From the IMG/VR virus record IMGVR_UViG_3300049460_000128, positions 62,001-126,000 of that record: DNA of 64,000 bases; one strand, given 5' to 3'. Below the pieces are notes generated by a model, which searched no databases, was not told the DNA's origin, and worked only from the letters and a program-made list of their open reading frames with translations. Both the position numbers and the translations under genes were made by a program. Below are positions 4,093 to 51,202 of this stretch, one piece after another. Every line of letters begins with the position of its first letter. Positions within the stretch are counted from its first letter, which is position 1.

Positions 4093-4535
4093 TTTCGTTT
4101 ATTTCCTTTGGCAAAGAGCTGATCTTCAGTTAACACACGGAATGTCAGGCCATGCTTGGCACACCATGCAGCAGCGGCTTGCCATTTGGCTTTGTTTACC
4201 GCCAATGTTAATTTATCTCGCTTGCTCTTGGCACGATCGTCATATGCTTCCTTGGCGGGTTTGATCTCAATCAATTCAGCACGACGATTACCAGTCTTAT
4301 CTGTGAATACAACCATGAGATCTGGAATGTAGAAAGTCCATTTGTTCGTCAACGGATGCAAGTAAGGAATGCTGAGACTCTCACTCGCCCATTGAGTTAC
4401 ATTTGGATGTGCATCCAGAACACGGAATACCGACAATTCCCAGCTTGACCTAAAAGTGATAGGCAGCGTTCCAATATACTTGGCTGCATTTACTGGTTGA
4501 TAATGCCCTTGACTAAACTTACTCATTATGCCCAA
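4089..4535 (-). CDS. gp4: Head completion nuclease (T4 gp4 / TnsA-like)
   Basis: SKFSQGHYQPVN..KY.G...FRSSWE...WASES..IPY...YIPD...LIEIKP signature. Confidence 0.9.
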   Translation of the reverse strand: MGIMSKFSQGHYQPVNAAKYIGTLPITFRSSWELSVFRVLDAHPNVTQWASESLSIPYLHPLTNKWTFYIPDLMVVFTDKTGNRRAELIEIKPAKEAYDDRAKSKRDKLTLAVNKAKWQAAAAWCAKHGLTFRVLTEDQLFAKGNKRK

Positions 4536-7197: not shown

Positions 7198-7304
7198 AAT
7201 AATGGTAGAGAGCGGATAAAAATTCAGACAAATGGAGTATCATCGTGACAGTATATTGAAAAGAGCCATGAAATCATAATTGATCTCAATACCATTTAGC
7301 CAAT

Positions 7305-7331
7305 AAAAAACCGCCCCTAAGAGCGGTTTTT
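7305..7331. terminator. Terminator after the tail sheath gene
   Basis: aaaaaaCCGC-ccctaaga-GCGGttttt. Confidence 0.7.
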
Positions 7332-7345
7332 CTGAGTGCTGACTA

Positions 7346-10210
7346 TTAGGTCAACGAATCGCCTGAGTTACGGATACGAACTGGCAAGTAGATGAACTCA
7401 ACCGACTTGATCGGTTGGATGTACATGTCACACCACAATTCGTTACGGTTACGACGTTCTGCGGTGTTGTTCGACGTATCGCAAACAACTGCGAAGTCTT
7501 CCAGGGCGCGCAGACCAACCAAACCAATCAGGAAGCGTTCGATAGTAGTCTTGAATGCATCACGAGTCTGCAAGTCATTCTGTTCGAACAAGAACGGCTT
7601 GGAGATATTGTCCAACTGGTAACGCAGGTAGTTGGCCAAACGAGCAACGTTGATACGATCCAAGGCGCTAGCAACTGGGCTCAAAGTCTTCTGTCCATAC
7701 ACTACCAGACCACGATTCGGGATGTAAGCAATCGGGTTGATCTTGTTCTGGTACAAGACGTCGCGCTGACCTTGGTTCAAGATTACTGGCTTGTATTCAC
7801 CTTCAGAAGTCAAGTAACCAACTGATGCTGCATTGGTAACCAAACCACGGTTGAAACCAGCAGGAGCGAACCACTGATAAGCAACTTGGTCATTGTACGC
7901 AATCGTACGCAGAGCAATGGTCGAAGGTGGGACCATAATTTCGGTACCATCAACGTTAGTGCTCAGACCCCATGGGTAATAGACACCCACGTTCGTGTTG
8001 CTAGAAGTCAAACCATCATCGCCGTTACTTGCGGCATTGTTGGCATTCGTTGCCCAACGTTGGATCGAAGTGCTGTCTGGTGTCAGACGTGCTGGGGTGT
8101 CACCAACAATGAACGAAACTTCTTTCTGGTCAGTGTTGAGGGTGATCATCTCATCGATCAGTTCTGGGTAGCCAGGAGCTGCCAACAGGTTGTAGTAAAC
8201 CATTTCCGAACGGATCTCTTGATTACCAGCCACCACCGCAGCCATAGCACGAACAACCATAGTACGCTGAGCTTTACGGCCCATGTATGGTGAACCGTCA
8301 ACTGCATTGCCGCTTGTGGTTACCCAACGACCAACATTGGTTACTGGTGGGAAGACAACAGTGTCCAGACCAACCGTGTAAGTGTTCAGCGAAAAGTCGG
8401 TGTTCGCATCGTAGCCACCTTCAGCGAAGTATGTGCCTTTCCATTCTTTGACGTTGTAGGTACCAAAGCGGGTGTTGAACAACAGAGTACCAGCCGAGTG
8501 TGTACGTGGATCAACGCAGTCTGGATCAACGAAGTTACTCAGAACCAGATCGTTTTCGCTTGTGCTGTTACGAACGTAGTCGATAGTTGCACCAGTGTAG
8601 TTCGGACCTGAGTCTTGACGTGCATCAGCAAACACGATGCCGTATGGTGTGGTTTGATCAGTATTGTCGATCAGAACCCAACGACGGGAGTTGGCTTGAT
8701 AGCGATACAGTTTTGGGTAGTTTTCCAGATCGCTGGAATCCAACCACAGATCGTTGTCAACCAGTGACGAACCATCCAATTGATAGTTTGGTGCCGAGCC
8801 AGCAATTTGCACGCCGTGCTTATCGGTCATTGGATACATCTTGCGATAACCCAACCACTGATCGCCATCACATACCATGATGTCAGCTTGGAAATTGGTG
8901 TTGAACCACATACGACCATCTACTGGGTCAGTGGAAGGTTCAACGTAGCTTTGTTCGTAAACCAACTGCGACCATGCACTACCTTGCCATACGCGCAATT
9001 GTTGACCAGCCAATGGATTTTGACTTGTGCCTTCAACGTTGTACTTAACGTAAACGGTGCCGTTAGTTGGTGTTGCGCCCAGGGCGGCGTTTGCGGCCAC
9101 ATCATCCGCGTACATTGGCGCATCAGCGACAACGAAAGCACCAACGGACGAGCTGTAGTATTTCACTACGAACTTAGTGCCGCTGTTAAGAGCTGTGGTC
9201 TTGATCCATACGTCACCAGAAATGCTTCCTTGAGGAACACGATTGTGGGTAGCATAAGTCAGTTTGACGCTTTTGGTGACGCCTGCTGACAACTGCATGG
9301 ATGCCAATGGGGTGCCGGTAACGTTCTGGAGTTCAACACTGTCCAGGATGAAGTTAAAACTGATACGACCAGCCGAGTCATTGGTTGCAATGATTTTATT
9401 GTTCAAGCTTGGTGCTGCTGCGATTGCGGCATTGATATCCGTAATGGCCTGTTGAACGCCGTTTGAAGTCAATACGATCACGACACCATTGATACTGAAC
9501 GAATCGTTTGGTGTGATGTTGGTGATACCCGTCGAGCCACGGATGATGTTGCGGGTCATCTTCCAGTTATTGGAACCAACCAGATACCACACGCCGTTCA
9601 ATTTCTCGAACATGCGGTTAGTGGCTTCAATGGTCACAACTGCGAAGTCGCCGTCTTCACCGAATGCAGCTTGTGGGAAACCAGTCGCGATGTCGTAGTT
9701 TGTTGCATCGCTTACAACCAAGATTGGTTGTTTCAGGAATGGGTCCAAGCTCGATGCGCCAGTGCTCTGGAACACACCAAACTGAGTGTTGACCAGATCC
9801 AGCCAGTAAGTACCGTTCAGTGGGGCACCACGTGGGGCTGAAACACTTGCATCCAGTTCTGCCAGATCGATGTCTGCACGAACCACGTATGCGGCGTTGT
9901 TGATACCCAGGAATTGGTATGCAGCGTGCAGACCATATTCATTAAGTTCATGGGCGTGAACTGGTGTACCTTGCACGGTGGCAAAGAATGGATCACCGAA
10001 TGTTTGATTCAATTCGCGTTGGCTGGTAGCCAGGTACAGCTTGCCGGCTTCACTTGGGACGGTGCCAGGAGCGATACCAACACCAGTTGGCGATGCTTTG
10101 TTATTGCGTGTTGCAAAAACGATCAATGGGACCGTGCCGGGACCGGCACTACCATAAATGGCTTCATTGATGATCTGTACATCTACGCCAGGTGAGACTA
10201 AAGTTGCCAT
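7346..10210 (-). CDS. gp18: Contractile tail sheath protein (gp18-like) with large internal insertion
   Basis: N-terminal MATLVSPGVDV; C-terminal WFAPAGFNRG...INPI...GQKTL...LDRINVARL...FEQND. Confidence 0.95.
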   Translation of the reverse strand: MATLVSPGVDVQIINEAIYGSAGPGTVPLIVFATRNNKASPTGVGIAPGTVPSEAGKLYLATSQRELNQTFGDPFFATVQGTPVHAHELNEYGLHAAYQFLGINNAAYVVRADIDLAELDASVSAPRGAPLNGTYWLDLVNTQFGVFQSTGASSLDPFLKQPILVVSDATNYDIATGFPQAAFGEDGDFAVVTIEATNRMFEKLNGVWYLVGSNNWKMTRNIIRGSTGITNITPNDSFSINGVVIVLTSNGVQQAITDINAAIAAAPSLNNKIIATNDSAGRISFNFILDSVELQNVTGTPLASMQLSAGVTKSVKLTYATHNRVPQGSISGDVWIKTTALNSGTKFVVKYYSSSVGAFVVADAPMYADDVAANAALGATPTNGTVYVKYNVEGTSQNPLAGQQLRVWQGSAWSQLVYEQSYVEPSTDPVDGRMWFNTNFQADIMVCDGDQWLGYRKMYPMTDKHGVQIAGSAPNYQLDGSSLVDNDLWLDSSDLENYPKLYRYQANSRRWVLIDNTDQTTPYGIVFADARQDSGPNYTGATIDYVRNSTSENDLVLSNFVDPDCVDPRTHSAGTLLFNTRFGTYNVKEWKGTYFAEGGYDANTDFSLNTYTVGLDTVVFPPVTNVGRWVTTSGNAVDGSPYMGRKAQRTMVVRAMAAVVAGNQEIRSEMVYYNLLAAPGYPELIDEMITLNTDQKEVSFIVGDTPARLTPDSTSIQRWATNANNAASNGDDGLTSSNTNVGVYYPWGLSTNVDGTEIMVPPSTIALRTIAYNDQVAYQWFAPAGFNRGLVTNAASVGYLTSEGEYKPVILNQGQRDVLYQNKINPIAYIPNRGLVVYGQKTLSPVASALDRINVARLANYLRYQLDNISKPFLFEQNDLQTRDAFKTTIERFLIGLVGLRALEDFAVVCDTSNNTAERRNRNELWCDMYIQPIKSVEFIYLPVRIRNSGDSLT

Positions 10211-13898: not shown

Positions 13899-15245
13899 TT
13901 ACAGGTGGATCCGCCAGAAACCTGGGTTGTATTCACCACTGATGGCCATAATCCAAGAACCGTTAAGGAAACGCAATTGCTTGCTGGTGCGCAAATTAAC
14001 CAAGTATTCACTGGTGTGGGTTGTGTTCGCGCTAAATGAAACAGTCCAACCAGTCATCGTATACTCAATGATGTCGTTCGCATATGCGGTAAGATTACCC
14101 CAAGCTTCACATGGCCCAATGTCTTCCAAGACGAGGTAACGCTGCCCAAGCGTCGCTGCCGGCAATTGCACACCTGGAATGTGAACCAATGGATCAATCA
14201 AGCCATTGACTGGTGGTTGAGTATTGGCTGGTAATGTGTCAATGTCAATCTGCCAGAACAAAACATTCGGACGACTACTATCAAGTTGAATGGTACCCAC
14301 GATATCAAGATCATCTGCTTGTTCGATATCGGCACGAAGTCGCAATTGTGATTGAGCTGGAGTAACGGTGCCATATTGATACAACAGGCGTTCCCAACTT
14401 GGTACTGGTGCATTTTCTGGTCCCAGTAGCGTAACTTCACCACCGTCAACACTGATGTGATAGTCACCAGGAGTAACAATCACTCGACCAACCTGTTCAG
14501 CATCACTCGATACGACCATGGTGTCTTCTGAATTCGTGGCGTCAACCGTACCAGCATAGATGTTGGTGACAATCTGTTCAATGACACGCTGCTGTGTGAC
14601 CTTAGCTGGTGGGCTGATCCACAATGGCAGTTTGAAGATAAACGTCATGATGTCGATTTCATCAGACGTACCAACTGGCATCGATCGTGATGACCACGCA
14701 ATACTGTCGAGGGTCATAGTAGTCATTGCTGACCAGTCCAATGGATTATCAGAGTTCTGAATATCAAAGCCCACATTGAATGCCATAACGATTTGCTCAA
14801 ACAACATGTGCTTCTGATTCTCGTTCGAGGTCCAAATATCAACTTGAAGTGTCATATCCATTGGGTGAGGCATCATACGATCAACGGTATACTTGGCACC
14901 AGGATCACTCGTGTATTTGCCAGTCGTTGGATCGACGGCCAATTCATGAACATGCAAGGTACTGATGTGTCCAGGATTTTGAGTACGTGATCGGTCAATT
15001 GCCATATCCTTAATGAATACGGTAATCATTGGTGTACTCAACAGCGAGTTTTCACTGTTGTTCTGGATGATCGATGCTACTTGCTTGTTCTGACTCGCCA
15101 TGCGACATGGCACTACCTGGTAACGAGGAGTACCATCAGCATTCTTCCCGGCTTCAATCTGAAAGCCCGAGAAGGCACGAACTACTTGGAGCAGGAAACG
15201 GCGTACTTGACCATCGTAGAAAAATGGAATCGCATCAAATGCCAT
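13899..15245 (-). CDS. gp15: Tail sheath stabiliser/terminator (T4 gp15-like) with C-terminal extension
   Basis: FFYDGQVRRFL.Q..R.FS, VPCRMA, P.P....LQVDIWTSNENQK....EQI...FN, F.LP.WISPP. Confidence 0.8.
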   Translation of the reverse strand: MAFDAIPFFYDGQVRRFLLQVVRAFSGFQIEAGKNADGTPRYQVVPCRMASQNKQVASIIQNNSENSLLSTPMITVFIKDMAIDRSRTQNPGHISTLHVHELAVDPTTGKYTSDPGAKYTVDRMMPHPMDMTLQVDIWTSNENQKHMLFEQIVMAFNVGFDIQNSDNPLDWSAMTTMTLDSIAWSSRSMPVGTSDEIDIMTFIFKLPLWISPPAKVTQQRVIEQIVTNIYAGTVDATNSEDTMVVSSDAEQVGRVIVTPGDYHISVDGGEVTLLGPENAPVPSWERLLYQYGTVTPAQSQLRLRADIEQADDLDIVGTIQLDSSRPNVLFWQIDIDTLPANTQPPVNGLIDPLVHIPGVQLPAATLGQRYLVLEDIGPCEAWGNLTAYANDIIEYTMTGWTVSFSANTTHTSEYLVNLRTSKQLRFLNGSWIMAISGEYNPGFWRIHL

Positions 15246-15900
15246 GGTTGTCACCTTGTTGTTTTAGCGCTTTTCTTTTAGCATGAGCTTCGCGCATTTT
15301 TTGTTTGGTTTCTTCGGGAAGTTTTTTCCCTTTTTTTGCCGCAGACATACGATCTTTCATTTCTTGAGTCCGAACCCAAGCACTCATATTCTGTTTGGCT
15401 GTTTCGTCTCGTTTCTGCCCTTTCAATTTTTCTACACGTTTAGTAATCCATTCGTCACTTTGTGTCTTACCTTTGTGTGAGTTACTTTTTCCTCGCATAG
15501 CATCATGATTGGCAGTCCGTTGCAATTTAGCCTTTTCACTAGTCTGCAAAGCAACTCGAATGTTATCTAAGTGTTCTTTACTTTTTACTTTGCCAGTCAT
15601 CAATGCGGATATTCGTTTGGCATTTTCTGCTTTGAGTCTATCGTACATTCGCCCTGAGATTTTAGTGTCAAGTCTATGAACCATATACCAAAGTGCAGTG
15701 AGCATTGGTCCCTTATGAATTTTGGCCAACAATAAATGAGCCACGAAATGTTCCCGGGCTGTCAATTCAACAATATTGCTTTCGACATCAGTACCACCCA
15801 TTGATTGCTGTATTATGTGGTGACGTTCTTTATAACCGTTAACGGTTTGACGTAATTTCGCCTTTTCAATTAATGCTGAATATATGTGTTGATAGTTCAT
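15235..15900 (-). mobile_element. Free-standing HNH homing endonuclease with NUMOD3-like basic repeats
   Basis: Y.ERHHII..SMGG.D...N.V.LTAREHFVAH.LL motif, then K-rich 'H...I' repeats; 3' end overlaps the gp15 start. Confidence 0.85.
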
Positions 15901-17555: not shown

Positions 17556-17646
17556 CTCATATGAAAGCCATATTTAGTCGTATGGTGCCATATGAAATAA
17601 TGGTGTTTTTGAGGATTCTGATCGATTTCCTGTCAAGTTTTTAAAA

Positions 17647-17669
17647 ACCTACCTGGAGTTTACGACATC
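17647..17669 (+). repeat. Intergenic 23-bp element, copy 1
   Basis: acctacctggagtttacgacatc, identical at 40971-40993. Confidence 0.9.
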
Positions 17670-17967
17670 GATATCATTGTTTTTTAGTGATTCCTCAAGA
17701 ATCATAGTCTTCATGATCTTCTTCTTTCTTCATGAAAGTATCAATCATTAGGCTAGTACCAAGAGACTATATGTGTCATACCTGAGTTCTTGTCTAGTAG
17801 TTCTTCCTCGAGTGGTAATGCTGTCATATCGGGATAGTATTCGTAGCTGGTGTAGTTCCTACTTTCCAGCTACTTGATTGATGGACTATTGGGGTTATTT
17901 TGTTACCTGGGGGTTATTTGTGTGGTTTGTGATAAATATCTTGGTATCCTTTATGGGAGTTTGGTAT

Positions 17968-18735
17968 ATGAGTGAGATCAGGAAGAAGTTGATTACCGAG
18001 ATGCAATTGAGTCTTGGTAGTGGGATGATTGATATTGAGTTAGATCCGGAGCATTATGAGTTTTGTGTTCAGGTTGCATTGGATCGATATCGTCAGCGGA
18101 GTACGAATGGTGTTGAGGAGTCGTTTATTTTTTTGGAGATTCAGCCCAACGTAGCTGTGTATTATTTGCCTGAGGCGGTTCAGGAGGTTCGTAAGATATA
18201 TCGTCGTGGATCGGGATCGGCTGGTAATACTGGAGTGGGGATTGATCCGTTCAATCAAGCGTTCATCAACAACATGTATATGATTGGTAATCCGTCGAAT
18301 ACGGGTATGAATTCTGGTGGTACTGGTTTTTTAGCCACGTATGAATTGAGTATGCAGTTTCAATCTATAGTTGGTACCATGTTTGGTCGAGAGGTCATGT
18401 ATACGTGGAATCCGGAGTCCAAGAAGTTGACATTGCATCGTAAGTTTACGGCTGCTGAGGAGGTGTTGTTGTGGGCGTACAATGATAAGCCGGACGATAT
18501 GATTATTAGGGATCGTATGAGTAAGGTTTGGATTCGTGATTATGCGGTTGCTCGTGCCAAGGTCATATTAGGTGAAGCGCGTTCGAAGTTTCAGCAGATT
18601 GCTGGTCCTCAGGGTGGATCGTCTTTAAATGGTGATGCCATGAAGGAGGAGGGTAAGGCGGAGATGGAGCGTCTTGATAAGGAGTTGACTGATTTGGTAG
18701 ACCAGAGTATGGGGTATGGCATTATCATTGGATGA
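17968..18735 (+). CDS. gp13: Neck / head-tail adaptor (T4 gp13-like)
   Basis: LG.GMIDIELDPEHYE, W...Y..A..K..LGEARSKF..IAGPQGG.SLNGD.MK.EG; start MSEIRKK after GGGAG RBS and TAAATA. Confidence 0.8.
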   Translation: MSEIRKKLITEMQLSLGSGMIDIELDPEHYEFCVQVALDRYRQRSTNGVEESFIFLEIQPNVAVYYLPEAVQEVRKIYRRGSGSAGNTGVGIDPFNQAFINNMYMIGNPSNTGMNSGGTGFLATYELSMQFQSIVGTMFGREVMYTWNPESKKLTLHRKFTAAEEVLLWAYNDKPDDMIIRDRMSKVWIRDYAVARAKVILGEARSKFQQIAGPQGGSSLNGDAMKEEGKAEMERLDKELTDLVDQSMGYGIIIG

Positions 18736-21080: not shown

Positions 21081-21965
21081 GTGGTTATGGACTGGATGCG
21101 GTTTTTACCGTGTGATCGAACGGCAAAGATTCCACGACAGTTAATTGAGTTGCCCCGGTGCGAGCTGGGGCAATCTCCTTTGGAGCTAGCCATTCAGGCG
21201 GTCAATGATATTGTGGCCAAGTATCCAGCCCCCTATACCTTGATGTTGAGTGGTGGCATTGATAGTCAGGCGATGTTATATGCTTGGGTGAAAGCTGGAG
21301 TTGAGTTTAATACCTTGACGTTTCAATATGGTCATTACAACCTTCATGACATAGAAGCCCTTCAGAGATTTGTTGATGCATTGGCATTACCAATCACATT
21401 GACCTATATGGATTTCAACGTGATATCATTTTTGGAAAATGAATACGATCAGTATGCTACCAAGTATGACTGTTCGAGTCCCCAGATTTGCACTCATATA
21501 CGGTGTAGTGAATGGGTCAAAGAGGGTACTGTGGTGTTCAGTGGCAATTTCGTCATGAGTCCCACAAATGGTGGTCCCATGTTGAGTCATGCCATATTGG
21601 GAATAAGGCGATATGCCGAGATCGAGCAAAGATCGATCGTGCCATTTTTCTTCCTGCATACGCCACAGTTGGCATATTCGTTTATCCCGTATGAAATTCG
21701 GGGTGCAAAATCTGCTTATGAAATGAAGACTGGTATGTATAGGGCAGCAGGCTTTCCCATATTGCCGCAAGCTGACAAGTATACGGGATTTGAACGTATC
21801 AAGGATCAATATGACAACATTGACGTATCGCTGAAAACCAAACTTCAATATGCAGAAAAGCCCAGTACCAGGCCCTTTGATCTAATATACCGGTATCCAT
21901 ATGAAACTAAATTCAATGACCCAAGAGTAGATTTTATCTTCTCTTTCCTAAAGGATAAGCCATGA
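21081..21965 (+). CDS. PP-loop ATP pyrophosphatase (asparagine synthase/QueC-like superfamily), paralog A
   Basis: LMLSGGIDSQA PP-loop; shares YxCxSPQ and KYTGFExIK with 33744-34649. Confidence 0.75.
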   Translation: MVMDWMRFLPCDRTAKIPRQLIELPRCELGQSPLELAIQAVNDIVAKYPAPYTLMLSGGIDSQAMLYAWVKAGVEFNTLTFQYGHYNLHDIEALQRFVDALALPITLTYMDFNVISFLENEYDQYATKYDCSSPQICTHIRCSEWVKEGTVVFSGNFVMSPTNGGPMLSHAILGIRRYAEIEQRSIVPFFFLHTPQLAYSFIPYEIRGAKSAYEMKTGMYRAAGFPILPQADKYTGFERIKDQYDNIDVSLKTKLQYAEKPSTRPFDLIYRYPYETKFNDPRVDFIFSFLKDKP

Positions 21966-23545
21966 ACTATATTATAGACTTTGAACCACATGTTAGTGCT
22001 GTGCAGATCAGCCAATACATGACTGACAATAATCTGACTGTGTTGTCAGTCTATGATCATTTTGAACACGTCTACGTTGTCACTGGTGCCATTCCACCAA
22101 AGACTGATGCAGTTGCGTCCGTTGTGATCGATGACACACATGCCATTAAACTGTTGGATGTAGTGCCGATTACCGACGATGCCCCTGAAATTACGTTTGA
22201 TCATGACGATCAAAATTGGTGGAAAGTAGTAAGCTTGATTCAAACTGATCTTGATGCGCCTACAACAACTATGAAACGCAAAGGTCATAGTGTTAACGTG
22301 TATCTGGTTGACAGCGGCATTACCGCATTGCATCCAGAATTTGCGGATTCTGATATCACAAACTTGTTCTCGGTGAATGGCACCTTTGACGATCTAACGG
22401 GTCATGGTACCGCCTTGGCGTCCTTGATCACTGGTAAGACTTGCAGTATTGCCGACCCAGCCCTGAAGGTTGTTAAGATCTTTGACAATAGTGGCAATGT
22501 CAAACAAAGCCAATTGTTGGCTGCAATGGATGCAATCATTGCTGATGTGGTGGCTAATCCAACCAAATTAGCAATTGCGAACATGAGTTGGGCAATTCCA
22601 CGTAATGAATATTTGGATGCCAAAATTCAATTGATGATTGATCGTGGTATCGTTGTTGTTGCGGCAGCGGGCAATAGTGGTTTGTCAATTGACGACGTTA
22701 CCCCAGCGGCCATTGATCAAGTGATCACGATTGGCGCGTATGACCAATCGTTCCACCCATGTGACTTCTCCAGCTATACTGGCACATCTGATCTGAACTA
22801 TACTGAGGGTGCTACCAACAATGGTGCATTGGATGGTTGGGCACCTGGTGAAAAGATCTACGTCGCCAATGTGAGTGGTGGCTACAGCTATGCGGTTGGT
22901 ACCAGTTTGTCGGCTGCTATCCATACTGCCATTTGTGCATATAATGGCATGCAGATGTTAGATGCTGATGGTGCCGTACTGACCTGTATCGAAAGCATTG
23001 TGACTGATACCAAAGCGATGTCATTGAGTCGTAAAGATTTGATGGTATATCCGGATAGCAAATATAATGACTCAGTCAACAAGGTGTCGACTTGTTTCAA
23101 TGTATTCACAGCTAGCCAGCGTGTCCCTAAACTGGTTGAGAATATTGCATTCACGGTCGGCATTCCAAACTGTCGTCGTTTGTTCCATCCATTGATGACT
23201 GCAAGTTATGAAGTATTGGGTGAAATCCCGGAAGGTCTGACTTTGTATCGTGGTATGCTTTATGGTTCGCCGACAACTGATCAAGTTGACTATGAATTGA
23301 AAACATTTGAAGTGGATGTTACCACTATGGATGGGCATACAATAAACCAGTTGGTGAATATTCTGATCAAGCAACCAGAATACGACCCGACCTTGTTGCC
23401 AGCGAATGATCCAGTATTGTCAGTCATGTACATGACTTGTTCTGGTTTCACATGTGGTAGCTGCGGTGGTAGTAATTCGTGTGGGTGCGGTAATACCAAA
23501 GCTGGTGGTTGCGAATGCCTGTGCCTGGGCTGCGATTGCCCGTAA
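21962..23545 (+). CDS. Subtilisin-like S8 serine protease with N-terminal prodomain and Cys-rich C-terminal tail
   Basis: Triad VDSG / GHGT / GTSLSAA plus AAAGN oxyanion Asn; 10 Cys in the last 35 aa. Confidence 0.9.
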   Translation: MNYIIDFEPHVSAVQISQYMTDNNLTVLSVYDHFEHVYVVTGAIPPKTDAVASVVIDDTHAIKLLDVVPITDDAPEITFDHDDQNWWKVVSLIQTDLDAPTTTMKRKGHSVNVYLVDSGITALHPEFADSDITNLFSVNGTFDDLTGHGTALASLITGKTCSIADPALKVVKIFDNSGNVKQSQLLAAMDAIIADVVANPTKLAIANMSWAIPRNEYLDAKIQLMIDRGIVVVAAAGNSGLSIDDVTPAAIDQVITIGAYDQSFHPCDFSSYTGTSDLNYTEGATNNGALDGWAPGEKIYVANVSGGYSYAVGTSLSAAIHTAICAYNGMQMLDADGAVLTCIESIVTDTKAMSLSRKDLMVYPDSKYNDSVNKVSTCFNVFTASQRVPKLVENIAFTVGIPNCRRLFHPLMTASYEVLGEIPEGLTLYRGMLYGSPTTDQVDYELKTFEVDVTTMDGHTINQLVNILIKQPEYDPTLLPANDPVLSVMYMTCSGFTCGSCGGSNSCGCGNTKAGGCECLCLGCDCP

Positions 23546-23559: not shown

Positions 23560-24879
23560 ATGGATATTAGTGTTATTGGCGGCGGTTATGTGGGCGTAAT
23601 CACCGCCATTTCCTTGGCTCAAATGTATGATCACAAGGTGATTGTAGTTGAACCTGACGAAGAAAAATTAGCCCATCTTCAACGTGGCTTGATGCCATTT
23701 CATGAACCATATTCTGAGCCTGTACTCCAGAGTATGGTTTACCGTAGTAGGCTGATGTTTGTGCCTGCACTCACGAGTCAATTTGGAACCATTCAGATCA
23801 TTGCTGTGGGGACTCCTGCCAAGCAGGATGGTTCAACTGACCTCACCCAAGTATTTGATGCTGCGACTACGATTGCTCGTTTGATGGATCAAGACACCAT
23901 CATTGCAATCAAATCAACGGTGCCGGTTGGCACTTGCGAGAAGATTGAGCAATTGATCAGCCATATCTTGATTGAACGTGGAGTCGTGTATATGTGGGAA
24001 GTCATCAGCAATCCTGAATTTTTGAGCCAAGGTCGTGCGATGGCGGATGCTCGTTCGCCTGATCGAATTATCATTGGTGCCAATACGTCATTTGGGCGTT
24101 TATATGGCAAAGTATTCCAGCACTCAAGTGCCATTGAATACGTGAGTCAAAAAGCTGGCGAGATGATCAAGTACATGTCAAATGCCATTCTGGCTACTAA
24201 AATTTCAATCATGAATGAAGCAGCGGCGTTTGCTGAGCATCATGGTATTGACATCATGGAAGTGGTTGATGGTGTTGGACGAGATGAACGAATTGGAATG
24301 TCGCATTTGACTCCAGGCATTGGATATGGTGGGTCCTGCTTACCAAAAGATGTCAGTAGCTTGCTTCACCAAGGACGCGAAGCCAATACACCATTCACTG
24401 TTTTGGAGACAGTTAGCGCGATTAATAATGATCAACACAGTCAGCTGTGTAAAAAGGTCATACGACGTTTTGGTGACGATCTCGTCAATCTCCGGGTCGG
24501 TATTTGGGGTGTATCTTTCAAACGTGATACCGATGATATGCGGAATGCCAAGTCGATTCCAATCATCAAGTTTTTACTCGAGCGTGGTGCCACTGTTGTA
24601 TTGCATGATCCCAAAGCAGTTTTCACTTGCATGGACATTATGGATACTGTATTATCAGCTGAACAAGTGAACCGTCTTTCGTTTAACATGGACAAGATGG
24701 TTGTTGCAACGAATGTTGATGCCTTGTTGTTGTTGAGTGACTGGGAAGAATATGACAATATTGATACCATGCGCTTACTGGGCATTATGAAACAACCATG
24801 TTTGTTTGATGGGCGTAATTTCTGGCAACGAGATTACATGATCCAAGAAGGTTTCGAATATCACGCTATAGGACGATAA
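23560..24879 (+). CDS. ugd: UDP-glucose 6-dehydrogenase
   Basis: IGGGYVG NAD site, IAVGTP, KSTVPVG, SNPEFL.QG, GIGYGGSCLPKD, FKRDTDDMR, FDGRN. Confidence 0.92.
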   Translation: MDISVIGGGYVGVITAISLAQMYDHKVIVVEPDEEKLAHLQRGLMPFHEPYSEPVLQSMVYRSRLMFVPALTSQFGTIQIIAVGTPAKQDGSTDLTQVFDAATTIARLMDQDTIIAIKSTVPVGTCEKIEQLISHILIERGVVYMWEVISNPEFLSQGRAMADARSPDRIIIGANTSFGRLYGKVFQHSSAIEYVSQKAGEMIKYMSNAILATKISIMNEAAAFAEHHGIDIMEVVDGVGRDERIGMSHLTPGIGYGGSCLPKDVSSLLHQGREANTPFTVLETVSAINNDQHSQLCKKVIRRFGDDLVNLRVGIWGVSFKRDTDDMRNAKSIPIIKFLLERGATVVLHDPKAVFTCMDIMDTVLSAEQVNRLSFNMDKMVVATNVDALLLLSDWEEYDNIDTMRLLGIMKQPCLFDGRNFWQRDYMIQEGFEYHAIGR

Positions 24880-27510: not shown

Positions 27511-28086
27511 ATGTCAATCTGGAGCGTAGATGTAGAATCTGACGGCCCTTGCCCCGGCAAGCACTCGATGATTAGTTTTGGGATGGTGCGAGTTGATGAT
27601 CAACTTACTACCACGTTTGGTGGCCGCCTCAAGCCAATTAGCGATATTTGGGTACCTGATGCCTTAGCGGTGTCTGGATTCACCCGCGAGGATACACTGT
27701 TGTTTGATGACCCTGCGGTTGTCATGCAGCAAGCAGCAGACTTCATTGCTGCAAATAATGTTGGGGATCGTCCAGTTTTCATTTCCGATAACAACGGATA
27801 CGATTGGATGTTCATGCACTATTATTTCCACATGTATTTGAATCACAATCCATTTGGTTGGAGTTCACGCCGCATTGGTGACTTCTACTGTGGCTTGCGT
27901 AAGAATTTCCGGGCAAGTGGTCGTGACTGGCACAAATTCCGTAAGACCCGTCACACACATGATCCGGTCGATGATGCAAAGGGCAACGCTGAAGCACTCG
28001 TGGGTATGTGTCACAAGTGGCAAATTGAATTGCCTGGTGTCACCCTGCAACCATTAACCAATCCAGTTCAACCAAGGCAAAAATGA
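27511..28086 (+). CDS. DEDDh 3'-5' exonuclease
   Basis: DVESDGP (ExoI), SDNNGYDW (ExoII), HDPVDDA (ExoIII). Confidence 0.85.
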   Translation: MSIWSVDVESDGPCPGKHSMISFGMVRVDDQLTTTFGGRLKPISDIWVPDALAVSGFTREDTLLFDDPAVVMQQAADFIAANNVGDRPVFISDNNGYDWMFMHYYFHMYLNHNPFGWSSRRIGDFYCGLRKNFRASGRDWHKFRKTRHTHDPVDDAKGNAEALVGMCHKWQIELPGVTLQPLTNPVQPRQK

Positions 28087-28901
28087 ATCAAGAACAAAAA
28101 CGAATGCAGGCACAGATTATCGCAGCATTGGGCGTTCAGCCGGTGATCGATCCTGTATTGGAGATCATCAAACGTGTGGGTTTCCTCGCGTCGGCGCTGC
28201 GTGCTGCAAACAAAGAATCCTATATCCTGGGTATAAGCGGTGGCGTCGATTCGACGACCTCCGGTCGCCTGGCAGTTCTGGCCTGTGAACAACTCCGCGG
28301 CCTGGACTATCACGCACAGTTCATCGCTGTGCGTTTGCCGTACGGCGAGCAACGTGACGAAGCAGATGCGCAACGTGCGCTTGACTTCATCAAGCCCCAC
28401 AAAGTGATCACCGTGAACATCAAGCCGGCTGTCGATGCGATCATGGCGTCCATGGATCTGGCCGGCTTGACTGACAAGCAGATCGACTTCCTGAAAGGCA
28501 ATGTGAAAGCGCGTCAGCGCATGATCGTGCAATATGCACTCGCGGGTCAGTACAATGGCCTGGTGATCGGCACCGATCATGCCAGCGAAGCACTGATGGG
28601 CTTCTTCACCAAGCACGGCGATGGCGCGGCCGACATTGTGCCGAAAGCCACGCTGGAAAAAGAGCAAGTCCGTGAAGTAGCGGCTGAGTTGGGTGCGCCT
28701 TCTGAGCTGGTTGGCAAACCACCAACTGCTGACCTGGAAGACCTGAATCCAGGTTTGCTGGACGAAGTTGCGTATGGCGTAACCTATGCGACGATCAGCA
28801 AATTCCTGCGCGGTCTGGACATCAGCGAAAACGATGCCGCAATCATCATCAAGCAATACTACAGTACCGCGCACAAGCGTAGTCTGGCTCCTGGTATCTG
28901 A
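28083..28901 (+). CDS. nadE: NH3-dependent NAD+ synthetase
   Basis: LGISGGVDST, AVRLPYG.Q.DE.DA, GNVKARQRM..QY, GTDHASE...GFFTK.GDGAAD, PTADLED. Confidence 0.93.
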   Translation: MNQEQKRMQAQIIAALGVQPVIDPVLEIIKRVGFLASALRAANKESYILGISGGVDSTTSGRLAVLACEQLRGLDYHAQFIAVRLPYGEQRDEADAQRALDFIKPHKVITVNIKPAVDAIMASMDLAGLTDKQIDFLKGNVKARQRMIVQYALAGQYNGLVIGTDHASEALMGFFTKHGDGAADIVPKATLEKEQVREVAAELGAPSELVGKPPTADLEDLNPGLLDEVAYGVTYATISKFLRGLDISENDAAIIIKQYYSTAHKRSLAPGI

Positions 28902-33136: not shown

Positions 33137-33760
33137 ATGACAATATCAGATTTAATCGTTAATTTTGGAGATGTGATTCAATTACGGGATCAAGGCTTTG
33201 ATATACCCAAAATGCAACGTGTGTTGGATGCAAGTGCTGAATGGAAGCAATATAATCCACGTAAGCCAATCAATCGATTTGGTCTATCTATCACATCTGC
33301 TGATGGCGGCTATTCAGGGGTCCCTGACCTAGACTCGTTGCGCGAGTACAATACGCTCAACGATACCGCATTCAACGAGCGCAGCTTCCGAACCAGAACT
33401 TCAATTTGTGATGAACTTGAGTTGCATCCTTTTTTGGATTTGTGGAAGCTGTGGTTAGGTCGATCACACTTTTTGCGGATGGATGCCGGTGGTTTCTTTC
33501 CACCACATCGTGACAATGGATTGACATTTCCACCGAACACTATTCGAATTCTGGTGCCAATTCGTTGGCAGAAGAATCATGCTGTTTGGATACAAGATGG
33601 TAAAATACTGCATCTGGAAGAAGGTCAGGCGTATTTCATCAACACCATGAAAGAACATTCGATCTTCTCGTATCAGGATAACTCCATATTGATGGTGCTG
33701 AATGTGGCAGTAAGTTCTGAGACGATATTGCAGGTAGCACAGAATGCAAAAGTTCTTTGA
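33137..33760 (+). CDS. 2OG-Fe(II) oxygenase (aspartyl/asparaginyl beta-hydroxylase-like)
   Basis: FFPPHRD (HxD), RILVPI, YFINTMKEHS (distal His); TAAATA upstream. Confidence 0.8.
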   Translation: MTISDLIVNFGDVIQLRDQGFDIPKMQRVLDASAEWKQYNPRKPINRFGLSITSADGGYSGVPDLDSLREYNTLNDTAFNERSFRTRTSICDELELHPFLDLWKLWLGRSHFLRMDAGGFFPPHRDNGLTFPPNTIRILVPIRWQKNHAVWIQDGKILHLEEGQAYFINTMKEHSIFSYQDNSILMVLNVAVSSETILQVAQNAKVL

Positions 33761-34649
33761 TGACGATTGGCTGACGTTCCAGGTTGACTATGATGGACTC
33801 ACGGTAGGTCAGTCCGCATTGATATGGAAAATTGCTGACGACATCGGAATGTCAGCAGACGTCGGAATCAGTCGTATGGTCGACGGAATTAAAAAAATGC
33901 AGCTGGGCATCAACCCAGTCGTATCGTTGAGTGGTGGGGTGGATAGTCAAGCGGTATGCTTGCTGCTCCGTGCAGCCAATATCGATTTCAAGATAGCTAT
34001 CATGCAATATGAAAATGATCTCAACGATATGGATGTCTCGAGTGCGGTCAGCTTCTGTGAAACAAAAGGGTTCAACTACGAGATAATCAAATTCAATGTT
34101 ATCCCATTCCTCACCCAGGAACTTTCAGTATATGTTGCACTGTATGAATGTCCTTCACCACAGTTTGCAGTTCACTTCAAGTTTTATGAAATGTTGATGA
34201 CACGTGGTGCGTCATCTATCCTTGCAGGTGGTAGTGCTCCATATTGGCTCAAAGATCGTTTGGTGTATCCCATCACCATATCACAAAACGCATGGACGGT
34301 ATTTGCCCGCAAAAACGATTTCAATCTATATGGAAACGTGCTGGGTTGGAGCCCGGATATTGCTATACCACTTATTAAGAACTCACCAAACGTCAATGGA
34401 TATGGTGAGACTCTGACTGGTAGATACGCATCTAAGATCGCCGGTATGCTTGCGGTTGGGCTTGATGTTATCGCACAGCCCAACAAATATACAGGGTTTG
34501 AAAAGATCAAACAACTATTTGCCCAGCACACGGGTGATCCACTATTCTTTGACAAATCGTTCCGCTATCGGTTTTTCAGAACACATCCTGATTTAGCTGG
34601 CGTATTGCTGCCCAACCTACCGTTCGAGACCGCAATCAAAACTCTATGA
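33744..34649 (+). CDS. PP-loop ATP pyrophosphatase, paralog B
   Basis: VSLSGGVDSQA; YECPSPQ and KYTGFEKIK shared with 21081-21965. Confidence 0.75.
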   Translation: MQKFFDDDWLTFQVDYDGLTVGQSALIWKIADDIGMSADVGISRMVDGIKKMQLGINPVVSLSGGVDSQAVCLLLRAANIDFKIAIMQYENDLNDMDVSSAVSFCETKGFNYEIIKFNVIPFLTQELSVYVALYECPSPQFAVHFKFYEMLMTRGASSILAGGSAPYWLKDRLVYPITISQNAWTVFARKNDFNLYGNVLGWSPDIAIPLIKNSPNVNGYGETLTGRYASKIAGMLAVGLDVIAQPNKYTGFEKIKQLFAQHTGDPLFFDKSFRYRFFRTHPDLAGVLLPNLPFETAIKTL

Positions 34650-35313
34650 TTTCAAAATTAGGTAAAGATGCGTCGTTCGATATCAAGATGTCTTCGCCTA
34701 AATTATGTTGACTAGTATATGACACAGTTAAGATGAGATCATTTTCATCTGGTACAGATCTGATCAGGATTTTCTTTTTGGTGGTATCCCATGCTACCGT
34801 CTCTTGATTGTGCATCGTCATATAATCGTCTACTTGAAAAGCGACAGGCCAGAATTCTGAAACGTGTTCACCATTCATATACTTGCTGATTCGTTCTTTG
34901 ATCAGGAAACGTCCAGGTACAGTTAGTGATAATTTATCCTGGTTATCAAGTATGATAGGCCAACCCAACACATGCTTGAATTCAACTGCATCATCCACCA
35001 CATCATCGGCGAAAAATACATTGGTCTTTTTTGCATTGGCTTTTAAACGAATCAACACACCAGACAGCCACATATCGTAATTGGCCAAGCATGAGTATTC
35101 CAAGAGACCAGGTGCGTATATGACTTTCTTACCAGTAGCTGTTGCCACTTCTTCTGCAAAAAAGAGGCTTCGTTTATCGTGACGACTTATATTACCAGAT
35201 ACCAATATGTAATCTGGCTTTTCCGTGCTACTAAGTGAAACTACTTCGGAGATTTGTTTGTCTGCAAATTCAATCAACTTGAGTTGTAGGTTTCTGATCA
35301 CCAGTAGTTTCAT
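34636..35313 (-). CDS. Degenerate calcineurin-like metallophosphoesterase-fold protein
   Basis: PDYILVSGNIS and IYAPGLLEY resemble the GD and GNHE motifs, with ligands substituted. Confidence 0.5.
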   Translation of the reverse strand: MKLLVIRNLQLKLIEFADKQISEVVSLSSTEKPDYILVSGNISRHDKRSLFFAEEVATATGKKVIYAPGLLEYSCLANYDMWLSGVLIRLKANAKKTNVFFADDVVDDAVEFKHVLGWPIILDNQDKLSLTVPGRFLIKERISKYMNGEHVSEFWPVAFQVDDYMTMHNQETVAWDTTKKKILIRSVPDENDLILTVSYTSQHNLGEDILISNDASLPNFEIIEF

Positions 35314-35371: not shown

Positions 35372-36706
35372 ATGGCCTATAACACCAATAATTTCATAAA
35401 ATCCACCACATTTATGGACTTAACTAGTTCGGCACTGTGGGCTCAGAATCGTATTGTGAATCGATATCGCCCATTGATTGCAAATCCTTTGATGGCAAAG
35501 CTGTCCAGCGATACTCCGGTAGAAGTCATTGTAATGGACTCTGGAATTCAACGCAATCATGTTGAATTCGCGCAAGCAACAATTGAAGACCTGTATTTTG
35601 TGCCAAACCTCCTGAACATCAGCGATGAGACTGGACACGGTACTGCAATGGCGTCTTTGATTGCTGGTGTAACTGTTGGGGTTGATCCAACTGCAACCTT
35701 GAAAATTGTCAAAATCTTTGGGGCAAGCTACGATACTTCCGAGGCTGAAATATTAGATGCCTTTGATGCAATCATTGCCTATCATGCATCAACACCAAAC
35801 GTCACGAAGATTTTGAACATGAGCTGGGCAATTCCTGCCAACGATTCAGTTAAAATCAAACTCAAGATGCTATCAGACGCTGGCGTGATATTGGTGGCTG
35901 CTGCGGGCAACTATCCTCAGTGCATTGATGACACTCTGCCGGCAGGTTTCGCCGGAGCAGTCACGGTTGCTGGATCGAAGCAATCTGACGAAGAATACAC
36001 GCAAGTATATGGTGTCAACAAGAAGATTGACATCTATGCACCAGCCGAACAGGTTTGTGTGGCGGCATTTGAAGACAACGTTGGTTATGCGACCACTGAC
36101 GGGTCATCTAGTTCGGCGGCTTTGGCTTCTGGTGTATTGAGCCTCACGCGCAAAACATTTGCCCATACCGTATCTAGTGATGATGTGAAACTGGCCACGA
36201 TGCAAAACGGTACAATTGGTGCCTTATTGGTGAATGACCGTGTGAGCTTTACTGAAAACCGTTTGTTGTATCGTCCTGATGTGAACTCTGTGCCTAGCGA
36301 TCAAGACTATTATGCAGGTAACATCACAATTGGTTCAGGTGCGGTGATCAACGTATCGTTGAATACGTTTATGCCAATCGAACAGTTTGAAAACATCTTT
36401 GACAAGTTGACGTTTGCTCTTGAGGTTGATTCTGAGTTTAGTTCATCAATTAGTGTTGGCCCACAGGGCGCCCTGACTATCGTTGACCCAGTATCGTACG
36501 TTCTTCCGCAAGACAGTGTGGTGAAAAAGGTGTCGTTCTATGTAACAGCCTCGACCACGACTATCACTATGACATCGCCAAAGATTCACTACTTCTTGTC
36601 ATCAATTGATAGTACAGATCAGGATATTGCAGCCCTTACCGATCAATTGAATTCACAAACATATTTGATCCCATTGACATTGAGTCAACTTAATAACTTC
36701 AAATAA
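35372..36706 (+). CDS. Subtilisin-like S8 serine protease, paralog 2 (no Cys tail)
   Basis: MDSG / GHGT / AAAGN / DGSSSSAA; TATAAATA upstream at ~35332. Confidence 0.85.
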   Translation: MAYNTNNFIKSTTFMDLTSSALWAQNRIVNRYRPLIANPLMAKLSSDTPVEVIVMDSGIQRNHVEFAQATIEDLYFVPNLLNISDETGHGTAMASLIAGVTVGVDPTATLKIVKIFGASYDTSEAEILDAFDAIIAYHASTPNVTKILNMSWAIPANDSVKIKLKMLSDAGVILVAAAGNYPQCIDDTLPAGFAGAVTVAGSKQSDEEYTQVYGVNKKIDIYAPAEQVCVAAFEDNVGYATTDGSSSSAALASGVLSLTRKTFAHTVSSDDVKLATMQNGTIGALLVNDRVSFTENRLLYRPDVNSVPSDQDYYAGNITIGSGAVINVSLNTFMPIEQFENIFDKLTFALEVDSEFSSSISVGPQGALTIVDPVSYVLPQDSVVKKVSFYVTASTTTITMTSPKIHYFLSSIDSTDQDIAALTDQLNSQTYLIPLTLSQLNNFK

Positions 36707-36709
36707 GTT

Positions 36710-37471
36710 ATGATTGAACCAACCAAAGTTGCGACCGTCAAATGCTCATTTCTCCTTAACGAAGTTGACGTATTTGAAATCAAAAACTTCTTAACTGACG
36801 CCGAGTTTGCCCGTATTCGAGAGTTCATCGAAGCGTATATTGGGCATACGGGTGTAAGTCAAAATGGTGACCGTCGAACCATCGTTGATGACGATGGGCG
36901 ACGTGTTTTCACTCTTGAATATTATGGTAACCGTCCGTTTCGTCTAGTGTGGAATTTGGGCCATACTCCAAAATACTGGCAGCAAAATCCATCAACCATC
37001 AATGAGTTTTTCAACAAGGCACTACGGGATAATGTTCATCCTTTGGTATATCGTTATTTGATGAAATGCAAGAATGAAATTGCTTTGTTCCAAGGTGATT
37101 GGCTACCCATCAGATGTGTCATCAATGTGTTGGGAAATGGGCTGTGCCTTGATATACACGGTGATGGTAATTTTCACGAAGTTGACTTGGAAAAACCCGC
37201 ACAGGTTGTGAGCACAACTCTGTATATGCGATTGCCCGCTGCTGGTGGTAAATTGTTTTTCTCTGATGGGTTCATGATGACCCCTGAAGAAAATAGCTTA
37301 GTCATGTTTGACGGTCAAGCGGTGTTACATGGGGTATCTGAAACACGAGATCCCGATCCAAATTTCATCCGCGTCGCCATGACAACCAGATGGTGCCGTA
37401 TTCAAGACCTGCTATTCCCAACAGTGACACCAATGCTGTATCCCCCAACTGATTTTGACGCGGGGATGTGA
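36710..37471 (+). CDS. 2OG-Fe(II) oxygenase (prolyl-hydroxylase-like)
   Basis: DIHGD (HxD), GGKLFF, LVMFDG...HGV, R. Confidence 0.8.
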   Translation: MIEPTKVATVKCSFLLNEVDVFEIKNFLTDAEFARIREFIEAYIGHTGVSQNGDRRTIVDDDGRRVFTLEYYGNRPFRLVWNLGHTPKYWQQNPSTINEFFNKALRDNVHPLVYRYLMKCKNEIALFQGDWLPIRCVINVLGNGLCLDIHGDGNFHEVDLEKPAQVVSTTLYMRLPAAGGKLFFSDGFMMTPEENSLVMFDGQAVLHGVSETRDPDPNFIRVAMTTRWCRIQDLLFPTVTPMLYPPTDFDAGM

Positions 37472-40956: not shown

Positions 40957-40970
40957 TCGAATTTCAAAAT

Positions 40971-51191: not shown

Positions 51192-51202
51192 GGACCACTC
51201 CC

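Follow-up and report, generated by a model that had tools for sequence, protein, structure and literature searches.

The window considered here, by which is meant the whole 64 kb stretch of DNA that was analysed, is part of the 296,594 bp contig of a T4-like jumbo phage (IMGVR_UViG_3300049460_000128). It harbors two gene pairs, A and B, each encoding a PP-loop ATP pyrophosphatase (PP-loop-A, PP-loop-B) and a subtilase of peptidase family S8 (S8-A, S8-B). The protease of pair A terminates in a Cys-rich tail, and the features of this pair are arranged as follows:

21081-21965, plus strand: PP-loop-A, a stand-alone PP-loop ATP pyrophosphatase with an asparagine/beta-lactam-synthetase-like synthetase domain
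21962-23545, plus strand: S8-A, a proteinase-K-type subtilase of 527 amino acids (aa); PF00082, E 4e-15
21962-22201, plus strand: propeptide-like domain of S8-A (about aa 1-80; beta-alpha-beta-beta in the AlphaFold2 (AF2) model, predicted local distance difference test (pLDDT) about 90; boundaries approximate)
22310-22312, 22403-22405, 22673-22675 and 22904-22906: catalytic Asp117, catalytic His148, oxyanion Asn238 and catalytic Ser315 of S8-A
23114-23395, plus strand: C-terminal beta-sandwich of S8-A (aa 385-478; strands within 392-470 at pLDDT >90), a variable domain
23396-23437, plus strand: linker of S8-A (aa 479-492, LPANDPVLSVMYMT; family consensus LPxDDPxxxIxL)
23438-23542, plus strand: Cys-rich tail of S8-A (aa 493-527, CSGFTCGSCGGSNSCGCGNTKAGGCECLCLGCDCP)

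The database gene call places the start of PP-loop-A at ATG 21087 (292 aa), which is the probable start. At its other end the gene reads ...AAG CCA TGA and overlaps the ATG of S8-A (21962) as ATGA, an overlap reported in the initial annotation of this DNA and read directly here. The end of S8-A, described there as 10 Cys within 35 aa, likewise has the coordinates and the sequence claimed.

Conservation of the gene pair

The PP-loop and S8 genes constitute a conserved phage gene module that is found almost only in phages. All linkage counts for A-type and B-type genes refer to loci fetched from the viral collection. The two genes of the 44 non-identical A-type pairs lie on the same strand with a gap of 0-1051 bp, the PP-loop gene being located downstream in 25 and upstream in 19. 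None of the unrelated S8 genes returned by the same search has a PP-loop neighbour. When the search is reversed and started from the PP-loop profile, an A-type S8 gene is found beside 35 of 36 A-type PP-loop genes, the exception being at a contig end, and every B-type PP-loop gene (125-190 bits) has a B-type S8 gene beside it. A control sample of 80 loci encoding DUF6171, a small protein described below, contains S8 and PP-loop genes together in 11 loci and either one alone in none. The initial annotation had named a PP-loop gene unlinked from S8 in other genomes as an outcome contrary to its proposal; no such case was found, and the genes are linked in every A-type locus fetched.

Pairwise identities of the S8 and PP-loop proteins co-vary (r = 0.89), a value not reached in any of 2000 Mantel permutations. 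The tandem pairs of one contig (L034) are mutual nearest neighbours for both genes, so that the pair duplicates as a unit, and two or three pairs occur in some genomes (L003; contig 3300028588_000819). Linkage and tandem duplication as a unit thus bear out the earlier description of PP-loop plus S8 as a duplicated core module.

The second pair of the window belongs to the B-type subfamily and encloses a third gene:

33744-34649, plus strand: PP-loop-B, a B-type paralog of PP-loop-A (28% identity, E 2e-13)
34636-35313, minus strand: gene X, between PP-loop-B and S8-B; no recognised domain
35372-36706, plus strand: S8-B, a B-type subtilase of 444 aa without Cys tail; PF00082, E 9e-23

PP-loop-B keeps all invariant residues of the PP-loop-A alignment, and the motifs common to both (SGGxDS, C-x-SPQ and KYTGFExIK), together with the identity given above, confirm the paralogy proposed in the initial annotation. 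The catalytic motifs DSGI, HGT, GN and GSS can be seen in the S8-B sequence, which is 40% identical to S8-A in the catalytic domain only; the C-terminal domains do not align. The earlier claim that S8-B lacks the Cys tail is correct, but its second half, that the protein stops at the equivalent position, is not, because the C-terminal domain is unalignable and carries its own conserved motif ending in Lys. S8-B ends ...LNNFK, with Lys444 (36701-36703) as the last residue, and B-type S8s in general end ...ALTD.NS.SFF......[ILF]K. Lys is the last residue in 18 of 22 and lies within the last three residues in 20 of 22, while the residues before it vary.

In 17 B-type loci, tblastn detects homologues of gene X that are placed and oriented in the same way, and gene X is therefore part of the B-type module rather than an insertion; it has no match in Pfam. 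A separate small precursor gene between PP-loop-B and S8-B was considered and rejected because the gap is occupied by gene X. In the window, S8-B is without the N-terminal propeptide-like domain of about 85-160 aa of other B-type S8s (524-604 aa), with its catalytic motifs intact, and gene X is shorter (225 aa vs 311 aa). The S8-B and gene X of the window may represent a trimmed variant, not a decayed one.

A further protein, DUF6171 (about 85 aa), is encoded no more than 1.5 kb away from 39 of the 48 A-type pairs, whatever the gene order (e.g., L005, L069-L072), and tracks with the Cys-rich S8 types. It belongs to a virus-dominated family with the invariant pattern C-x2-C-x9-C-x2-C-x-C-x12-CP..KW, including six invariant Cys, on which nothing was found in the searchable literature. 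With at least 561 matches on viral contigs, this family is far larger than the module. DUF6171 was rejected as a defining third component, being absent from the window and from L003 and occurring without the pair in 69 of the 80 control loci. Speculatively, it may help to fold or oxidise the Cys-rich knot described in the next section.

The protease and its cysteine-rich tail

A search of 5.8 billion proteins yields 488 relatives of S8-A, and the analysis covers the best 120 of these 488, which are full length and 36-65% identical. As judged from profile and model, S8-A is a proteinase-K-like subtilase of family S8, in which the order of the triad, the oxyanion Asn, the subtilisin fold and an N-terminal propeptide-like domain are all found. 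At least 99% of the 120 relatives have the triad D117/H148/S315 and N238, all of which are invariant in an 85-row alignment. The profile matches the proteinase K precursor 8rse at 1.5e-31, with the alignment starting from residue 60, and Foldseek places proteinase K (target-normalised template modelling (TM) score, TMt, 0.83) and PCSK9 among the top matches of the model. The AF2 model, built from the alignment of 85 sequences, has an overall pLDDT of 87.8. It is confident for residues 1-486, comprising the propeptide-like domain, the S8 domain and the beta-sandwich, in agreement with the prodomain, catalytic domain and Ig-like segment described earlier, and falls below pLDDT 50 for residues 487-527. 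A signal peptide is not evident in the S8-A sequence. Acidic residues after the oxyanion Asn (I-D-D/E...TPA) are conserved in both A-type and B-type S8s.

The regions of S8-A differ widely in mean pairwise identity, from 0.51 in the catalytic domain through 0.37 in the propeptide, 0.36 in the linker and 0.21 in the beta-sandwich to 0.13 in the non-Cys positions of the tail. The low loop identity of 13% fits the variable tip suggested in the initial annotation, which had also stated beforehand that a tail invariant across homologues would speak against its proposal; the loops are instead found to vary on a scaffold of six Cys.

The last 35 aa of S8-A contain 10 Cys, compared with 6 in the preceding 492 aa. 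The scaffold consists of C493, C498, C501, C507, C517 and C519, which are present in at least 99% of the 120 relatives and invariant in the 85 rows; the remaining four (C509, C521, C524 and C526) are extra Cys. A Lys in loop 4 occurs in 119 of 119 relatives, usually 2-6 residues before Cys5 (K513 in S8-A, 23498-23500). Because the six Cys are conserved in at least 99% and the Lys in 119 of 119 relatives, the Cys-rich tail is not a chance feature. The scaffold is present in at least 119 full-length relatives as a module of 30-60 aa, in which Cys5 and Cys6 nearly always form CxC and are followed by 0-11 residues (mode 2; 8 in S8-A).

Uncapped tails contain 6, 8 or 10 Cys, an even number in 96 of 96 proteins, whereas the Cys counts of the protein bodies are odd and even about equally often. 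The extra Cys come as pairs at recurring sites, for example in loop 1 and loop 4 in 28 proteins; about 7 distinct gain patterns are seen, so that few independent events underlie the even counts. Because the number is always even, we infer that the tail forms a knot of 3-5 disulfides, with 5 in S8-A. As in knottins, an even Cys scaffold is combined with variable loops, although no known Cys-rich family is matched in Pfam or the ESM Atlas. The composition of the tail (CxC/CxxC) also resembles that of metallothioneins, but the even parity and pairwise gains favor disulfides. The metal- or disulfide-bound tail of the initial annotation is therefore supported as regards disulfides, while parity disfavors metal.

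Between the two closest relatives, the tail is about 71% identical over 35 residues, compared with 65% for the whole protein. Hypermutation by a diversity-generating retroelement was rejected, the tail-coding DNA having no repeat within the 64 kb window. Since the closest pair shows no faster divergence of the tail and there is no template repeat, the variability stems from relaxed constraint around a scaffold that stays fixed. A different Cys-rich end, ...WGTSCGGYCGSYSDSNCDMVP, is found in the S8 of a 318 kb contig (L110, IMGVR_UViG_3300025015_000009) that also carries two tandem PP-loop genes and a DUF6171 gene; this module may be an intermediate or a fourth type.

About 20% of the S8-A relatives are longer (P0008, P0014, P0025, P0064, P0067, P0083 and others), and the knot is kept in all of them. 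In one group the knot is followed by a Peptidase_S74 chaperone domain, and the junction ...CxC(x1-4)-SDRRLKxNI has the Ser-x4-Lys spacing of the autocleavage dyad; on rescanning, 2 of 3 S74 caps exceed the Pfam cut-off and the third (P0067) is weak (18.3 bits). In the other group, a Hint domain beginning with Cys-Phe follows the knot behind a Gly-rich linker. P0074 carries a 140-aa insertion inside loop 3 of the knot, with weak Hint-like matches below the Pfam cut-offs. Among the 120 relatives there is no C-terminal extension without an S74 or Hint cap. Because every extension behind the knot is a self-cleaving cap, the knot is expected always to lie at the mature C-terminus, a few residues past Cys6. 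It was considered whether the PP-loop partners of Hint-capped variants are degenerate, with a Hint thioester replacing adenylation; this was rejected, since the partners keep SGGxDS and GFExxK.

The PP-loop enzyme and the protease C-terminus

At E <=1e-30, the PP-loop family comprises 257 clusters (50% identity), nearly all of 280-330 aa and essentially viral. The PP-loop-A alignment of 69 sequences has 19 invariant residues and includes an invariant S55-G-G-x-D-S60; the conserved features of the family are SGGxDS, N85, D88, C-x-SPQ, GFExxK and FDxxxR. A single Cys, C129, is near-invariant, and an Fe-S-type Cys triad is absent. The top PDB fold for the AF2 model of PP-loop-A (pLDDT 95.9) is AsnB (1ct9, E 5e-7), followed by the beta-lactam and carbapenam synthetases 1mbz, 1jgt and 1q15 (to 5e-5). 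TM scores are 0.44-0.52 to these enzymes and AsnB vs 0.32-0.39 to the sulfurtransferases LarE and TtuA. The fold matches consist entirely of PP-loop enzymes, with LarE, TtuA, GMP synthetase and NAD synthetase scoring lower than the AsnB type. Members of the AsnB family are likewise the nearest named structural neighbours in the ESM Atlas (TM 0.62-0.67). The family profile PF00733 is unmatched by the window proteins, weakly matched by one B-type relative (E 0.0027) and found in 14% of one Atlas cluster. The 292-aa PP-loop-A has neither an N-terminal nucleophile (Ntn) glutaminase domain nor one that is glutaminase-like, which leaves ammonia or an amine of the substrate as the nitrogen nucleophile. 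We conclude that PP-loop-A is probably a carboxylate-adenylating amide synthetase without glutaminase, outside the QueC and AsnB families as defined. QueC identity was rejected, because the Pfam match, the sole one, spans residues 54-114 only; TIGR00364 scores 25.5 bits vs a cut-off of 150.3 and the CxxCxxC motif is absent. Separate QueC-like proteins occur near some modules: a 343 kb contig (L058) encodes a 196-aa QueC-like PP-loop protein with CxxCxxC directly after a B-type S8 (7227-7817), and L005 and L071 carry QueC/Asn_synthase-like genes of 210-233 aa beside GNAT acetyltransferases near the module.

B-type S8s, which have no Cys tail, mostly end in hydrophobic-Lys-COOH, and the sole feature common to both S8 types is thus an invariant Lys located at the free C-terminus or close to it. 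Because the PP-loop enzyme also pairs with tail-less S8s, the tail Cys are unlikely to be its target. Judged from these sequence features, we propose, with a probability of roughly 0.4, that the PP-loop enzyme modifies the C-terminal region of its partner S8. It would adenylate a carboxylate and form an amide bond on the C-terminal end of the protease, at the invariant Lys that lies next to the free C-terminus in A-type and B-type S8s. In the simplest chemistry, the Lys epsilon-amine would attack the ATP-activated C-terminal carboxylate, giving a caprolactam-type cap in the B type and a side-chain-to-tail macrolactam through the knot in the A type; C-terminal amidation or Lys acylation would be close alternatives. 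The end product would be a protease with a chemically locked variable C-terminal tip. Within this proposal, the specific Lys-to-C-terminus lactam is put forward tentatively. Beta-lactam and carbapenam synthetases form intramolecular amides via carboxylate adenylation. The terminus of a partner protein is modified by a QueC-family PP-loop enzyme in the type IV cyclic oligonucleotide-based antiphage signalling system (CBASS), and the same is proposed for QatABCD (doi 10.1101/2025.04.06.647259; PMC13279940). C-terminal modification is favored because it is the only hypothesis found that makes use of an amide-forming adenylating enzyme needing an amine donor together with an invariant Lys and a free carboxylate kept close to it, if needed by self-cleavage.

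Several observations weigh against this proposal. The substrate assignment is drawn entirely from co-occurrence and conserved residues, and the co-divergence of the two genes is partly expected for any two genes of one genome. The invariant Lys would equally fit a P1 or a ligand-binding residue. A-type tails have no conserved C-terminal residue, so that the enzyme would need to recognise the knot itself instead of a motif at the terminus. In fold, AsnB-type enzymes are preferred to the rest of the PP-loop enzymes by a modest margin (TM about 0.5), and a sequence search of the PDB with the PP-loop profile yields no relative, QueC included. The knot itself is not folded by AF2 (pLDDT 35-43), and without a signal peptide on S8-A the formation of disulfides would have to await lysis or depend on a helper; DUF6171, the candidate for this role, is missing from the whole 64 kb window and from its closest relative (L003).

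The tail may alternatively be the core peptide of a self-releasing precursor, modified by the PP-loop enzyme, cut at the linker by S8 in cis or trans and freed as a knotted peptide of about 4 kDa (a toxin, signal or inhibitor), with Hint or S74 acting as a self-removing follower in the long variants. This adds a release step and is compatible with C-terminal modification. Borosins provide a precedent, as their core peptide is fused to its own enzyme, and the combination of a protease with an Asn-synthetase-like enzyme follows the established logic of lasso-peptide maturation. The protease lies on one side of the core and, in about 20% of relatives, a self-cleaving domain lies on the other. Cys1 is preceded by a semi-conserved linker (LPxDDPxxxIxL), the loops are free while the Cys scaffold is fixed, much like those of secreted knotted peptides, and one genome can contain several paralogous pairs with different tails. 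However, no cleavage site is invariant, the linker residues being conserved at 30-55%, and the B type has the same enzyme pair without a comparable core. The beta-sandwich also co-varies in variability with the tail (identities of 0.21 and 0.13), as expected for a two-part recognition tip, and release of the tail is considered unlikely. Such a tip is the basis of another explanation, in which the beta-sandwich and knot steer the protease, either freed by lysis or carried by the virion, to a host surface or matrix protein while the PP-loop enzyme acts on another substrate (a small molecule, a nucleotide or another S8-processed protein). The two most variable regions are indeed the C-terminal beta-sandwich and the tail, their order with prodomain and S8 is like that of PCSK9 and the proprotein convertases (prodomain, S8, Cys-rich C-terminal domain), and S74 chaperone domains are typical of distal phage tail fibres and spikes (Pfam PF13884). 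In the window and in L003, moreover, the module follows a gp13-like neck gene in a co-oriented block, whereas in other phages it lies among non-structural genes. A targeting role leaves unexplained both the invariant Lys or Lys-COOH and the co-divergence and adjacency of the genes in all sampled loci of two to three subfamilies in every gene order, which makes it quite an unlikely account of the pair.

If the invariant Lys is instead the P1 residue of an autoinhibitory pseudo-substrate lying in the protease's own S1 pocket, the enzyme would remain latent until a trigger. The classic "standard mechanism" inhibitors are small domains rich in disulfides that expose a Lys or Arg, and the C-termini of subtilase propeptides remain bound in the active site in the manner of a product; the B-type Lys-COOH would be product-like in the same sense, and the A-type knot would resemble the canonical loop of a disulfide-rich serine-protease inhibitor. 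Both types have the invariant Lys in variable surroundings, and the acidic residues after the oxyanion Asn are conserved in both. Autoinhibition nevertheless appears improbable, since it leaves the ATP-dependent enzyme, which is always adjacent, without a role and does not account for the self-cleaving caps behind the A-type knot, and S1 pockets of the proteinase-K type are usually hydrophobic. More improbable still is a tail that binds Zn, Cu or an Fe-S cluster, or that carries a persulfide to a PP-loop sulfurtransferase of LarE, TtuA or ThiI type. The many CxC motifs, synthesis in the reducing cytoplasm without a signal peptide and the failure of AF2 on the tail, as often seen for metal-dependent folds, are in line with it, as are the fold matches to LarE and TtuA (E about 1e-4) and the near-invariant C129 of the PP-loop enzyme. 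Metal sites, however, do not require strictly even Cys numbers with pairwise gains (96 of 96), the same enzyme accompanies B-type S8s without a Cys-rich tail, AsnB-type enzymes match better than sulfurtransferases, and the PP-loop protein has no Fe-S-type Cys triad.

Known systems and genomic setting

In lasso-peptide maturation, as in this module, a protease is combined with an ATP-dependent enzyme of Asn-synthetase fold that is expected to form an isopeptide or lactam, and a small third protein, the ribosomally synthesised and post-translationally modified peptide recognition element (RRE), may be compared with the DUF6171 found in 39 of 48 loci. The lasso protease, however, is a Cys protease of transglutaminase fold in place of the serine protease S8, and the PP-loop enzyme described here is without an N-terminal domain. 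The lasso precursor is a separate leader-core peptide, while the candidate substrate of the module is the protease's own C-terminus. Moreover, the RRE is of PqqD type, in contrast to DUF6171, which is Cys-rich and not encoded in the window, and the proposed bond from Lys side chain to C-terminus is the reverse of the lasso topology. No match to PqqD or to a lasso B-protein was found in the open reading frames (ORFs) neighbouring the pairs, and no small precursor ORF was seen there.

The beta-lactam and carbapenam synthetases, which together with the top match AsnB are among the best structural matches, adenylate a carboxylate that is then attacked by an amine of the same molecule; however, they act on small molecules and have an N-terminal domain of about 200 aa, and the likeness is confined to the fold (13-17% identity, TM about 0.45-0.5). 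In Cap9 (type IV CBASS) and QatC (QatABCD), a QueC-family PP-loop enzyme is paired with a partner whose flexible terminus is modified by Cap9 and proposed to be modified by QatC (doi 10.1101/2025.04.06.647259; PMC13279940). Those systems belong to bacterial defence and involve an N-terminal Gly motif and a 7-deazaguanine carboxylate, whereas the partner in the phage module is a protease with a conserved C-terminal Lys and the QueC match is restricted to the PP-loop motif region, far under the family cut-off. Membership in a defence system, examined with PADLOC, was rejected: the matches to QueC (5e-5), subtilase (2e-13) and, over the catalytic core, IetS (6e-6) are partial and generic, and IteS_antiphage reaches 22.9 bits vs a cut-off of 900.

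As in the borosin OphMA, where the core is a C-terminal fusion to an enzyme from the same pathway, the candidate core lies at the end of an enzyme; the fused enzyme of OphMA is a methyltransferase and release is performed by a separate prolyl oligopeptidase, while here the fused enzyme is S8 and both modification and release are putative. PCSK9, among the top folds, and the proprotein convertases share the order of prodomain, S8, beta-rich domain and Cys-rich C-terminal region, and knottins and cyclotides share a six-Cys scaffold with free loops. Neither PCSK9 nor knottins are related in sequence to the Cys-rich region of the tail, which is 30-60 aa long, phage-encoded and synthesised in the cytoplasm. 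The self-cleaving domains that about 20% of relatives carry immediately behind the knot correspond to the Peptidase_S74 of phage tail fibres and to Hedgehog-type Hint, with canonical Ser-x4-Lys or Gly-Cys junctions; they are absent from S8-A, and in the relatives the part upstream of the cap is a protease and not a fibre shaft.

The components of the module belong to known superfamilies, but its composition and architecture are undescribed, and we know of no described system that shares either. The initial annotation, which did not recognise the architecture as a described phage system, agrees in this with the database and literature searches. The PP-loop/S8 pairing was not found in the searchable literature, including a 2026 neighbourhood survey of the whole PF06508 superfamily, and public records for the family proteins sampled all read "hypothetical protein". 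Megablast and tblastn searches of 50,697 phage records for cultured relatives returned no full-length relative of S8-A and no PP-loop relative of either type, and neither type of module is present in a cultured phage. Among 185,579 cellular species genomes, two weak PP-loop matches were found, both in metagenome-assembled genomes (MAGs) of Bdellovibrionales. The more substantial one, which has usable flanks, lies on a 428 kb Bdellovibrio MAG contig (L229, CBIHNI010000001.1; PP-loop 151 bits), with no S8 within 4 kb and a 968-aa ORF following it. It could belong to a phage that was binned wrongly or to a cellular relative that has a different partner; the second is on a 1.15 kb contig.

The module occurs in hundreds of uncultured, mostly jumbo, T4-like phages. 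It is possible, though doubtful, that it constitutes an unrecognised phage protein-maturation system in which a stand-alone beta-lactam-synthetase-like PP-loop enzyme cyclises the subtilase C-terminus onto the invariant Lys, giving cyclotide-like, fast-evolving tips that may also be freed as peptides. If so, the action of a PP-loop amide synthetase on the C-terminus of a protease would represent a new pairing of enzyme and substrate and could be a new protein modification, and the recently found modification of protein termini by PP-loop (QueC-family) enzymes would extend beyond N-termini and bacterial defence to C-termini and to phages. The diversity of the tail loops suggests an arms race with a target, and the hundreds of loop sets that the tail presents on one scaffold of six Cys and one Lys amount to a natural library, which gives them interest for peptide engineering. 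Even if the proposed mechanism is wrong, it needs explaining why the genes are paired in all sampled loci, why the Lys is invariant and why self-cleaving caps are used repeatedly to expose the C-terminus.

No GenBank phage is close to the window at the DNA level. A single public run, a rhizosphere metagenome that is probably the source sample, contains this DNA. The window includes T4-type structural genes on either side of a plus-strand accessory block:

92-1675, minus strand: large terminase
4526-5863, minus strand: tail tube
7346-10210, minus strand: sheath
13899-15254, minus strand: gp15
17878-18735, plus strand: gp13-like neck protein
54131-55894, minus strand: portal

The block, located between the neck gene and the portal, contains both PP-loop/S8 pairs, UDP-glucose dehydrogenase, a canonical NadE and 2-oxoglutarate (2OG)-Fe(II) oxygenases. 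In the window and in L003 the module lies after the gp13-like neck gene, while its neighbours in other phages are DNA polymerase, NUDIX, GNAT and 2OG-oxygenase genes and not structural genes. Auxiliary metabolic genes at 23560-24879, 28083-28901 and 36710-38067 encode UDP-glucose dehydrogenase, the NAD synthase NadE, an endonuclease-V-like protein and a 2OG-Fe(II) oxygenase. UDP-glucose dehydrogenase lies directly 3' of S8-A, an arrangement also found in L003, and tandem 2OG oxygenases are recurrent near the PP-loop/S8 module in other phages.

Three sets of repeats occur in the window. A 66-nt direct repeat (17604-17669 vs 40928-40993; 74% identity, identical 3' core ACCTACCTGGAGTTTACGACATC) has one copy just 5' of the accessory block and the other within it at about 41 kb, and could be a shared promoter or a recombination site. 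In-frame periodic repeats are found at 56553-56911 (3 copies, 144-nt spacing), within a tape-measure-like ORF of 1150 aa, and at 50640-50882 (2 copies, 153-nt spacing), within a 540-aa ORF (49605-51227).

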